A stretch of DNA of 64,000 bases from Phaeosaccion multiseriatum (taxonomy: Eukaryota; Protista; Ochrophyta, other classes). The translations under genes were made by a program, and so were the position numbers. The stretch spans positions 186,001 through 250,000 of the forward strand of contig OZ218960.1 of assembly GCA_965112735.1 (NCBI GenBank), written 5' to 3'. Of this stretch, positions 56,833-62,353 are shown piece by piece. Within the stretch, counting starts at the first letter, position 1; every line of letters begins with the position of its first letter. A model generated the notes under the pieces. The model was not told the origin of the DNA and searched no databases. It saw nothing but the letters and a program-made list of their open reading frames with translations.

Positions 56833-57474
56833 TTTCGTTGTCCGTTAACTCTCACTCCTCTTCGACTGCCCGGTTCCACGAGCAGTTTATCACCGATTCT
56901 GTGAGTCGGTGGACCAACACGGCAACTTAGTCGTCGGCGTGTGTGTCCATTTTTTTCAGCTGATTTTTTTCTTCTGTGCACCACCCAGCGCAGCACACCA
57001 ACGGGCAGTTCTCTTCCCTCGTCTCTAGCGAAGCCCCACACACTTCGGCGGAACGCAAATGAGAGCTCTGTGAGCTCAACACATCGGTGCCGATCGGTTT
57101 TAGAGTCTTAGTTGGGGAAGGTGAAGCTGAAACTGAAACCTTTCTCACAAGGAAGGCTATCCTTCGGCTCTCACCGTGACTCAGCTCGGAGGCTGACTGG
57201 GTGCCTTAGGGGGGCATAAGGGGGATGGAGAGAGGAAACCAGCTCAACGTGCCTGCATGTGGAGAACAACTCCGGGACGATGGAGAGCGCAATGGCGCTT
57301 GAAGAGCTTGGCCTCGAAAGCGCTGCTGAAAAAAAGTTGACACAGTCTGTCGTGGTGACAGGGGGGGGAGGCCTTGGGAATCATGGACGAACTCGGCCCG
57401 CACAGCTGATGGCAAAAAAAAAAAAAAGCAAAAATAAACCCTAAAAAAGGGCTGATGAGCTGAAAATAAAATTC

Positions 57475-57555
57475 TGAGCAGTGTGGGATTTGAACCCACG
57501 CGTATCACTACATTGGCGCCTAAAGCCAACCCCTTAACCACTCGGGCAACTAAAA
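57475..57555 (-). tRNA. tRNA-Leu(UAG) with unpaired acceptor-stem positions 1-3 (pseudogene or 5'-repaired tRNA)
   Basis: TTTTAGT TG CCC GAGTGGTTAA GGG G TTGGC TTTAGGC GCCAA TGTAGTGATACGC GTGGG TTCAAAT CCCAC ACTGCTC A. The D, anticodon, variable and T arms pair; A and B boxes are present; downstream T-runs follow. Confidence 0.85.
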
Positions 57556-58137
57556 AGCTGCAGATTTTACAGGCCTTCCGAATCCGAATAGGGTCCTCCG
57601 TCAGGAGGCATGGCCCAACTTCTCCTTCTTGCATGGAATGCTTCGCCAGCCCATTCTTCGCCCTTTTCCATGCAACGGGGGGGCCAAATCTTTATGGTGG
57701 CGAACGACGGGTCAGTGAATCTCAGGGCCCGAGGAATCAGCAGCCACACGCACGCACACGCGCAGCGCCTTCCGTCCGCGCCTCTTGTTCTCACTCGACG
57801 CCACCATACTCCCCTCTAGCACCGCCCACTGTTTCTGCTTTTCGTTCTCACCATCATCCTCTCCTGCTCCTCCTGAGCGATAGCGATGGTAGGCAGCCAC
57901 AAAGTCTCGGACTGTGCTCTCCACGCTGGCCCGTTTCCTCTTACTCCGGCTCACAGCCACCACCACGCCATTCGCCAGATCCCAGTCTCGACGGCCGCAA
58001 GGGGCTGTGGCAGCATCAGCCAGTCCCGCCATCTTCCAGCCCTCTCCACAGACAACGGGCAGCTGAATTTCGACCCCGGCATGAAGCCCATTCCCATCGT
58101 CCTTTCCTCCCTTTTCCTCCCTCTTCTCCTCCATCAC

Positions 58138-59288: not shown

Positions 59289-62200
59289 ATGGTGAGGAAA
59301 CGCGCCTCGTGCACGGCGAAGAGAGGGAACGTTCTTTGTGCACACTTGCCCATCGCTCCCCTCTTCTCCCAGCCCTTTTTCTTTGCCAACCCTCTCTCTC
59401 AATTCCGATCGGACTGACAAGCCTCCCTTGGTCATTCTCCCTGTACCCTCTGCCCTTCTTCTCTGCCTGCCCGTGCAGCAAGCCCTGCTCGGCCGAAATC
59501 CCGGCGCCTCTGTGCTGATAGAGTTTGACGGCGCGGATAAGAGGCCGACAAAGTCCCTTCAAGTCAGCGACAAGCGGCCCCCAATCTTCCAGGCCCTTCC
59601 AATCTTCCAGGGGGGGGAGGTGAGGATATAGGTATCGACCGCGCGGGACTGGATTGATCGGCAGCTTCCCTCCGTACCATCCCCTCCTGCCCCCCTTCTC
59701 TGAGGCTTGCCCGTTATCGTTTCATCTCCTTGTCGCCACCTCTCCCTCATTCCCTCTAACTCTGTCTGTTGTTCCCGGGCTCCATCCTACTCTTCCTTTC
59801 TCTCCCTCTCCCTCTCTACATTACCTTCCGCCCCTCTTCCTATTCTCCCTCTCACTTTCCTCCTCTCTTGTCATCATTGCCTCTGCTTTCCCTCTTGCGC
59901 TTCCTCGCCCTCCCTCAACTCTCTCCCCCCACCCACCTCCCCGGCACGCAATGCACACGCACACCCTCTCTCTCCACTTCTGATGGCTACTCCTCTCCCA
60001 GTCCGTGCGAGGCGTGGTCACAGTGCTTGTATCCCCCGGCAAGCGTGTTGAGCACTTGGGCATCAAAGTCGAGCTTGTGGGGCAGGTTGAGCTCTTCCAC
60101 GAGAGGGGAAACAATCACGAGTTCACCAGCCAGGTACATACAGGGTGTCATGTGTCAGGTATCAGATGTCAGGAGGCAGATGGCAGCAGAACGAGAGGCA
60201 TGCACGCAAGGTAGCAAGCATGCTACCCACCCACCCCAACCCTCCTCACTGAGCAAAGGGAGGTAATGCCTTGACGCATCCATTCATCCACACCTATCAC
60301 AGCAAGCTAAACTCCAGCGTACTCCATACTCCTCGTTTCATCACCTTCCCTTCCCTCCCCTGCCCTGCCCTGCCTTGCCCTGCCCTACTCAGGTGAGGGA
60401 GCTGGACACGGCCGGTCTGCTGACTGAGAACCGCTTCTTCCGCTTCGACTTTAGCTCCGTGCTCAAGCCCTTCGAGTCGTACAGCGGTCTCAATGTGCGT
60501 TTGCGCTACCTCGTTAGAGTCACCATCTCCAGGGGGTACGGAGGGAGCATTTCCAAGGAACAGGTGGGTGAGGAGGGAAGGAGGAAGGGAGGGAGGGAGG
60601 GAGGGAGGAAGTTATCGACCCATGGATGGACGGATCGATGGCATTCCTCTCTCTCTTTCTCTCTCTCTCTCTCTATGTGTGTGTATGAGGGCGGGTGTCT
60701 CTCTCTGTCCTCTCTCCTCCATCGCTCCCTCATGGCTTCTTTACCTCAGCCCGTCGGGGGGGGGGGGGCATGCCCAATGGGGTGTGTGCGCTGTGTGAGG
60801 CTTGCTCTCACCGTTCTTGCCTTGCTTTGTCATGTGACCTCCTTCTGGCATGCACGCGCGTTCTTGTGGTGGTGTATGGCTCTGGTGCCTCTTACCCCCC
60901 GCCCTCGCGCCTTGATTGTCCGGTGATGGGGCATACCTTGGATGCTGTGTGTGTGTGTGTGTGTGTGTGCAGGACTTTCTCGTGCAAATATTGGGGCGGG
61001 AGCCTGAAGTGAACCCCACTCTGAAGATGGAGGTGGGCATCGAGGAGTGTCTACACATCGAGGTGAGGGGTGAGGGGTGAGGGGTGAGGGAGAGAGAGGG
61101 GGAGAGAGAGAAAAGAATGAGGAGGCAGGAAAGAAGGTCGGCGGCTGCTAGACGAGAGAGACTCCTTCTGAGGACAGGACATGTCATATGTCGTCCGTCA
61201 CGTTGGAGCTTTGGTCTGTGGGGTTTGTCCCTCCTCTCGGTCAGGACCAGGGACCAGGGACGGGGGGCATTATCCCCCGCACCTCCGCTTCTTCTGCCTC
61301 TGCTTTGTCGGCATCACGCTGGACGATCGGCGATCCGGTCTGCCCCTTCTCGGGCTCCTGTGATGCCACCACGACACTCTCAATGGTCCTGGGCCTTCTC
61401 ACCTGCCTCCTCACCCTCTGTTCTCGCCCCCCCTCGCCATTCAGTTTGAGTATGACAAATCCAAGTACCATCTCCAAGACGTCGCCATTGGGAAGGTGTA
61501 CTTCTTGCTGGTAAGTCAAGAGGAGCGCCCCTGGGTCTTGACATACGTGTGTAGGTGTGACGCTTTGAAACGAAACGAAACGAACCTGCAACATGCCCCT
61601 GCCCCTGTATCACCAACTGCTGCCCCTGCCCCTGCCCTGTGAAGGTGCGCATCAAGATCAAGCACATGGAGCTAGCCATCATCCGCCGCGAGTCCGCCTC
61701 GTCGGGGCAGAAGGCGTACAACGAGAGCGAAACGCTCGTCAAGTACGAGGTCATGGACGGGGCGCCCGTCAAGGGGGAGTGCGTACCCCTTCGCATCTTT
61801 TTCAAGCCCTACGACCTCACACCCACGGTCAGTCAGTCAGTCAGTCAGTCAGTCCGTCCGTCAGTATGCAGCTTGCAGTTTCAGGTTCGGTTTTTGAGCA
61901 TCAGCTTTGAGTTTGAGTTTTCAGGTGGTGGTGGTGGCGGCAGCGGGCATTGCTCATCAGAGCTGTCACATGGTGTGTGTTCGCGGGGGGGGGGGGGGCT
62001 TGGGAAGGGAGGTAGGGCTGCATGGGCCTTAGGAGGAGAAAGAGGCGGCCTGGCGCATGGTACGCCTTCGTAGGAGACGTGGGGTGGAGGGCTTCTCTTT
62101 AGTGGGCGTGCTTGTGCCTGAACCCTGGCTACTAACCAACCAACGAATCGATCAGCCAACCAAACCCCAAACCAACCAACCCAACCAACGAACCAACCAC

Positions 62201-62353
62201 CCACCCACATACACACCCAACTACCTCCAGTACGTGGACGTGAACAACAAGTTCAGCGTGCGCTACTTCCTCAATCTCGTGCTCGTGGATGAGGAGGACC
62301 GCAGGTACTTCAAGCAGCAGGAAATCATCCTCTGGAGAAAGTTCTTCGGCTGA
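59289..62353 (+). CDS. VPS26: Retromer subunit VPS26
   Basis: ATG|GTGAG micro-exon at 59289, then exons giving ..PGKRVEHLGIKVELVGQVELF, VRELD..FDFSSVLKPFESYSGLNVRLRY, KMEVGIEECLHIE|FEYDKSKYHLQDVAIGKVYFLL|VRIKIKHMELAIIRRE..KYEVMDGAPVKGECVPLRIF..LTPT|YVDVNNKFSVRYFLNLVLVDEEDRRYFKQQEIILWR. Confidence 0.95.

Follow-up and report, generated by a model that had tools for sequence, protein, structure and literature searches.

Introduction

To our knowledge, templated repair of tRNA 5' ends in living cells is known only from the mitochondria of a few protists, and the cytosolic role of Thg1-like enzymes, for example the essential DdiTLP4, is still open. In the mitochondria of Acanthamoeba, Dictyostelium (DdiTLP3) and chytrids, the 5' ends of tRNAs are edited by Thg1-like 3'–5' polymerases (PMC6471195, PMC4284800). 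The nuclear genes described here resemble the substrates of these enzymes in three ways: apart from mismatches in the first acceptor pairs the tRNAs are intact, the compartment has several such tRNAs, and a template for repair could be provided by the 3' strand (PMC6471195, PMC4284800). They differ in being nuclear genes for Pol III, with introns of the nuclear type and with T-runs as terminators. In addition, one of them needs position 4 to be fixed, a search revealed no clear gene for a Thg1-like protein (TLP) and the organelle tRNAs need no editing.

Small disruptions of tRNA genes are also known from the nucleomorph of Guillardia theta, where inserts of 3–24 nt that do not fold into a bulge–helix–bulge motif (BHB) are removed, as was shown by RT-PCR (PMC4090602, PMC3728597). 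The similarity lies in tiny inserts unable to form a BHB, found there in an alga with a red-algal-derived plastid and in a genome where further tRNA genes are disrupted too (PMC4090602, PMC3728597). However, the Guillardia inserts lie in the D arm, the T arm and the anticodon stem–loop, whereas the acceptor stem is concerned here, and the upstream match that would define an ‘insert’ is not beyond chance. The permuted and ectopic-intron tRNA genes of Cyanidioschyzon, Ostreococcus and the Bigelowiella nucleomorph likewise belong to low-copy algal sets in which the odd genes are the only copies. In contrast to these, the present Leu(UAG) gene has no 5' piece downstream before the terminators and no BHB, and is collinear except for positions 1–4. 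Finally, the Leu(UAG) gene shares with ordinary nuclear tRNA pseudogenes the broken acceptor stem, a T-run inside the gene and its rejection by ARAGORN, but it has no functional paralogue in standard layout and no decay elsewhere, its promoter boxes and terminator are intact, and its defect recurs in two more single-copy genes. Further literature drawn on is PMC13578239.

The reading favoured below, to which we give a probability of about 0.35, is that this tRNA-Leu(UAG) gene is functional and that its 5' end would be repaired post-transcriptionally.

Structure of the tRNA-Leu(UAG) gene

The window is a 64-kb stretch (G000:C11:186001-250000) of a 67-Mb assembly of an ochrophyte alga with 22 contigs, of which 16 are nuclear and C17-C22 are organelle DNA. 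It contains a single tRNA match, on the minus strand. In the numbering used here position 1 of the tRNA is nucleotide 57555 and the discriminator A73 is nucleotide 57475. The features of the locus are as follows.

57475–57555, minus strand: tRNA-Leu(UAG) gene of class II, 81 nt, with neither intron nor encoded CCA (Rfam RF00005, 41.8 bits; class II model R1 built here, 85.4 bits, full length)
57552–57556, minus strand: T5 run over position -1 and acceptor positions 1–4, the fifth T (57556) being position -1 (from the sequence)
57476–57482, minus strand: 3' acceptor strand ACTGCTC, positions 66–72, which would template G1-A2-G3-C4 (C4 opposite G69, where the encoded T4 already wobbles; from the sequence)
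57522–57520, minus strand: anticodon TAG (Rfam and R1 alignments)
57538–57548, minus strand: A box, positions 8–18, within a stretch (positions 8–25) identical to Leu(UAG) on metagenomic contigs L120 and L121
57486–57496, minus strand: B box GGTTCAAATCC, inside a 19-base T-arm stretch GCGTGGGTTCAAATCCCAC common to Leu(CAG) and Leu(AAG)
57443–57471, minus strand: Pol III terminator region, T4-A-T4 (57463–57471) then T6 (57443–57448) (from the sequence)
57564–57569, minus strand: upstream TAAAAT at -14 to -9 (flank comparison of nuclear tRNA genes)
57557–57560, minus strand: upstream CAGC, giving 6/7 acceptor pairs if the T5 run is skipped, which is consistent with chance (simulation, P = 0.29–0.70)

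The 5' acceptor strand TTTTAGT faces ACTGCTC, which is followed by A. This gives the mismatches T1×C72, T2×T71 and T3×C70, a T4·G69 wobble and normal pairs 5–7, such that in place of a seven-pair acceptor stem only pairs 4–7 form, the first of them a wobble. Rfam RF00005 aligns the gene over model positions 5–66 only, and ARAGORN rejects it. In the class II covariance model pairs 1–3 are the only non-standard ones, the other 20 of 20 being standard; were three broken pairs placed at random among the 23 modelled, they would be the three terminal ones in 1 of 1771 cases. The remaining traits are those of a eukaryotic cytosolic class II tRNA-Leu: a cloverleaf, a long variable arm (with a stem of 3 bp), A73, a Leu anticodon and G at position 37. 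The anticodon probably reads CUG as well as CUA.

A first-pass annotation made from the sequence alone had described a tRNA-Leu(UAG) with mismatched pairs 1–3 and a T4·G69 wobble but with intact D, anticodon, variable and T arms, A and B boxes and downstream T-runs and no encoded CCA. The sequence and the covariance model bear out this description in full. The span given there, 57475–57556, covers the gene but also takes in position -1 (57556), and the strand, which was left unstated, is minus.

The defect is confined to the 5' end. Positions 8–46 are identical to those of Leu(UAG) genes on metagenomic contigs, and the body can be considered undecayed because positions 8–25, which were unforced by the search pattern, are identical in two such contigs. 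The T arm is that of Leu(CAG) and Leu(AAG). Neither the scattered lesions nor the loss of A box, B box or terminator by which a pseudogene may be recognized is seen in Leu(UAG). Moreover, the acceptor stems are normal in 10 of the 12 other nuclear tRNA genes read and in all organelle tRNAs (ARAGORN end offsets being allowed for), and in the six metagenomic Leu(UAG) genes all seven acceptor pairs are normal; the defect is therefore not a general artefact. On four contigs from marine metagenomes (L117-L119 and L122) the tRNA genes are tightly packed in clusters, in which a normal Leu(UAG) is followed 10–25 nt on by a tRNA gene with an intron-like A-rich insert.

The same anatomy can be read as that of a recently broken gene, in which one small rearrangement has put T-rich upstream sequence at positions 1–4 and the tRNA is no longer made or used. 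Four adjacent changes with none elsewhere fit a single mutational event, the T5 run amounts to a Pol III terminator-like signal within the gene, and the gene is rejected by ARAGORN. The leader and positions 5–10 together form a near-palindrome (GCAGCT, TTTT, AGTTGC) which could mark a template-switch mutation. Against this, the body is undecayed and matches distant orthologues. On balance we regard a broken gene as nearly as probable as the favoured reading, and the evidence from copy number and from other tRNA genes, given below, bears on it from both sides.

Several other origins were considered and rejected. A chimera with half of Ser(UGA) was suggested by a 28-nt identity with that gene at positions 3–30, an identity accounted for by D and anticodon arms of Leu(UAG) that are conserved in other organisms. 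A retro-copied tRNA is not compatible with the lack of CCA and the presence of a genuine terminator, and an organellar origin or organellar editing is not compatible with organelle tRNAs that are clean and of a different type.

Copy number and the class II tRNA set

A BLAST search with 82 nt against the whole assembly returned the Leu(UAG) locus itself only. Searching the whole genome with the class II model gave nine nuclear class II tRNA genes of standard layout, and a pattern running from the D arm to the anticodon assigned nine anticodons to them, all different (Leu AAG, CAG, UAG, CAA and UAA; Ser AGA, UGA, CGA and GCU). The locus is the sole standard-layout Leu(UAG) gene of the genome; BLAST, model and pattern all cover the standard layout, and permuted or split genes of dissimilar sequence would escape them. 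Within that scope none of the three revealed a functional paralogue of the same isoacceptor, such as would be expected for a pseudogene, nor a Leu(UAG) copy with a normal 5' end elsewhere. The suggestion of 5' repair made in the first-pass annotation thus survives this comparison.

This sole gene is most likely still in use. The lack of an intact standard-layout copy counts against a broken gene, as does the use of CUA, which accounts for 1 of the 19 Leu codons in the exons of the neighbouring Vps26 gene; long ORFs gave codon counts with too much noise to be useful. On the other hand, CUA is probably readable by an inosine-bearing Leu(AAG) tRNA, which would take over if the gene were broken. 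Leu(UAG) itself may for that reason be dispensable, and this weighs against repair.

The nuclear tRNA set as a whole looks non-redundant, each class II isoacceptor having a single gene. Of the 15 nuclear tRNA genes read, 9 have a canonical 37/38 intron, some 13–40 nt long, which is a very high share for a eukaryote. Genes like Leu(UAG) are missed or mis-scored by standard tRNA finders, such that the decoding set of the genome would be under-reported in its tRNA annotation.

Acceptor stem mismatches in other nuclear tRNA genes

Fifteen nuclear tRNA genes were read, with Leu(CAA), Ser(GCU) and most class I genes falling outside the sample. Leu(CAA) maps to C12:901028-901110 and Ser(GCU) to C3:5749842-5749936. 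Three of the 15, all from the nuclear compartment, have mismatches at the 5' end: Leu(UAG), Ser(CGA) and Leu(UAA). In Ser(CGA) (at L097) TATTGTT is set against AGCAGAC, breaking pairs 1–2, and in Leu(UAA) (at L051) CTGGGAA is set against TTCGTCT, breaking pairs 1, 2 and 4. Both are single-copy by BLAST. Both have intact arms (D, anticodon, variable and T), along with intact canonical introns and terminators made of T-runs, the one exception being a non-standard pair that the class II model places in the variable arm of Leu(UAA).

All eight broken pairs of the three genes fall within pairs 1–4 of the 23 modelled. If the three genes represent independent events, the chance of such clustering is approximately (4/23)^3 = 0.005. 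The defect of Leu(UAG) belongs to a pattern that is small in this genome but not random. The first-pass annotation had looked to other nuclear tRNA genes for the same pattern, and its expectation holds for 5'-end mismatches but not for their composition, as the mismatched letters in Ser(CGA) and Leu(UAA) are not T-rich.

That three non-redundant genes are hit in the same small region is otherwise hard to explain and argues that selection keeps the rest of each gene intact. By the wobble rules UUA can be read by the Leu(UAA) type of tRNA only. The sole Leu(UAA) gene is therefore unlikely to be dead, which speaks for a cell able to rescue or tolerate 5' ends of this kind. The clustering and the need for a UUA reader together make the strongest, though indirect, case that the genes function.

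Were the genes broken instead, Leu(UAA) and Ser(CGA) would be independently decaying minor isoacceptors, or would have been replaced by genes of unusual layout. The affected tRNAs are indeed minor U34/C34 isoacceptors, and Leu(CAG), Leu(AAG) and Ser(AGA) have no acceptor-stem defect. However, three single-copy genes hit in one four-pair region (~0.005) are unlikely without selection, and UUA would become unreadable if the single Leu(UAA) gene were lost. A pseudogene, named in the first-pass annotation as the simpler alternative, is weakened by this recurrence and by the lack of an intact copy, but it is still a serious rival. If the genes are dying, the alga is in the course of losing its sole reader of UUA, which would be an unusual instance of a codon being lost.

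The mismatches could also be harmless, with the tRNA used as encoded and its end left frayed by three terminal pyrimidine–pyrimidine mismatches. Class II tRNAs may tolerate such an end because recognition by their synthetases depends chiefly on the long variable arm and the discriminator base, and the three strongly affected genes are all class II (3/3). Pyrimidine–pyrimidine oppositions make up 9 of the 11 acceptor mismatches in the nuclear tRNAs read. These include a milder defect in Ser(UGA), the single U3:U70, and the only Glu(UUC) gene seen (L050:291-362, G000:C1, minus strand) has adjacent internal U:U oppositions at 5:68 and 6:67, which stem from a T4 run in its 3' acceptor strand. Nevertheless, the acceptor stem of Leu(UAG) would be left with four pairs, one of them a wobble, and the acceptor helix is used by RNase P, tRNase Z, the CCA-adding enzyme and the elongation factor. 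A cytosolic tRNA mismatched at all three terminal pairs is not known to us, and we consider use of the tRNA as encoded very improbable.

Two further observations were made on these genes. At the Leu(UAA) locus (L051:225-360, G000:C1:3797358-3797493) a second, degenerate T-arm-like copy lies 5 nt past A73 and is followed by a T7 terminator; the 3' part of the gene seems to have been partly duplicated in tandem. Partial 3' duplications of this type are thought to be the raw material for permuted tRNA genes. Retrotransposon primer sites were sought as proof of mature tRNA-Ser and the idea was dropped, since BLAST with Ser(CGA) and Ser(UGA) matched the genes themselves only.

Predicted transcription of the locus

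Most of the 15 nuclear tRNA genes read have an A-rich motif (YAAAAT or CAAAAW) 9–25 nt upstream, which may mark the region in which Pol III starts. In Leu(UAG) this motif sits upstream of the T5 run. After other tRNA genes a first run of T4–T5 is always backed by a longer run, which suggests that T5 is leaky as a terminator here and would permit read-through. Yeast Pol III starts about 18–20 bases before the A box, from which A5 is no more than 3 bases away. The idea that the T5 run forces Pol III to start near A5 is thus unsupported, in view both of the place of the A-rich motif and of the closeness of A5 to the A box. A separate word, GCTATTTTTCG, is common to the upstream flanks of Ile(UAU) and Leu(UAA), and together with the A-rich motif it may represent upstream elements for Pol III. 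The folding of the precursor is not better than that of shuffled sequence (z = 0.19 and -1.16).

In another reading the true positions 1–4 would be the upstream CAGC and the T5 run would be a small insert of 5 nt in the 5' acceptor strand, to be looped or cut out. In the other two genes the corresponding parts would be AGAC, an insert CTGG and GAA for Leu(UAA), and GT, an insert A and TTGTT for Ser(CGA). Skipping the inserts restores 6/7 pairs in Leu(UAG), 7/7 Watson–Crick pairs in Leu(UAA) and 7/7 pairs in Ser(CGA), and according to a passage in PMC4090602 (citing Kawach 2005) 3-nt tRNA inserts are removed elsewhere by an unknown mechanism. However, random leaders match as well (P = 0.29–0.70 for Leu(UAG), 0.55 for Ser(CGA) and 0.04–0.21 for Leu(UAA); combined ~0.12), such that the match is suggestive in Leu(UAA) alone. 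C1×C72 would still be unpaired, Pol III would have to get past T5, the three genes have inserts unlike one another in length, sequence and position, and five bases cannot form a BHB motif. We consider an insert improbable.

Two larger rearrangements were rejected. For a permuted layout, the only fitting four-letter word downstream is GGGT, which lies beyond two T-runs. For a long intron at position 4/5, GRGY words occur at -61 and beyond but have no BHB support, and the T5 run would be intronic.

Possible repair of the 5' end and search for an enzyme

With the transcript expected to begin upstream, the favoured reading of Leu(UAG) as a tRNA with a rebuilt 5' end would proceed as follows. We infer an upstream start by Pol III, with transcription carrying on across the leaky T5 run. 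Processing at the 5' end would then strip the leader together with the unpaired positions 1–3, and perhaps 4. The lost letters would be resynthesized in the 3'–5' direction with C72, U71 and C70 (and G69) as template, giving G1-A2-G3, a fill-in like that performed by Thg1-like proteins in mitochondrial tRNA 5' editing. Two points in the genes themselves weigh against this scheme. A T5 run inside the transcribed region should end part of Pol III transcription, and the pair-4 mismatch of Leu(UAA) lies past the three positions that are edited in known systems.

A candidate enzyme was sought by a six-frame search of the genome. The Thg1 domain (PF04446) gave one partial match at G000:C6:1575734-1575886 (E 0.021, 20 bits, profile positions 80–126), a possible exon of a Thg1-family gene by sequence similarity. 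The same search gave no match to the Thg1 C-terminal domain (PF14413) and no extra Thg1/TLP paralogues, while the identical method recovered both catalytic subunits of the tRNA-splicing endonuclease. Thg1 is wholly absent from some eukaryotes (PMC4338351). None of the organelle tRNAs has 5' mismatches; as they need no editing, no TLP would be expected for the organelles and there would be no existing editing system to borrow. The extra Thg1/TLP paralogues predicted in the first-pass annotation were hence not forthcoming: there is a single marginal PF04446 exon, no Thg1 C-terminal domain and no organellar editing that would need a TLP. The possible PF04446 exon counts in favour of repair. That it is one 20-bit partial match, with neither C-terminal domain nor paralogues and with clean organelle tRNAs, counts against it, and a genome search that yields no convincing repair enzyme sits well with the genes being broken.

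A wider claim would be that the 5' ends of Leu-UAG, Leu-UAA and Ser-CGA are all removed and rebuilt by templated 3'–5' synthesis, and that this photosynthetic stramenopile has cytosolic tRNA 5'-end editing, the first outside mitochondria. We consider this unlikely. If it were true, one-third of the single-copy class II nuclear tRNA genes would need their 5' ends rebuilt, and the alga would offer a direct test system for the cytosolic role of Thg1-like enzymes.

Genomic neighbourhood

The stretch at 57708–57999 of the window, 150 nt upstream of the tRNA gene, belongs to a repeat family of at least 54 copies with 72–86% identity. The scored copies are all on contig C1, most of them at 83–770 kb, and some carry an insert of about 35 bp; the family has no significant Pfam match. 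Truncation of the gene by a transposon was rejected, as the repeat stops 150 nt short of the gene.

Two loci elsewhere in the genome (L067 and L068; G000:C13:951361 and 1089595) contain good T arms, GGGTTCGATTCCC, which in place of an ordinary tRNA body are preceded by repeated units of about 40 nt, tggtggtacaagaatcacaag..., and may represent either repeats derived from tRNAs or genes that have been disrupted. At G000:C8:1630314-1631202 the D-arm pattern search met by chance a tandem array of period 36 bp, the unit of which includes AAGCGGTCAAGATGAGGGTCTTCGG.

With regard to synteny in relatives, the one related contig examined (L123) is without a tRNA, and its exon identity is only 77–81%. 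The Vps26 gene, made up of short exons, lies at 60005–62353 of the window on the plus strand. In the databases it comes closest to brown algae and a EukProt transcriptome, with 60–81% identity over one exon.
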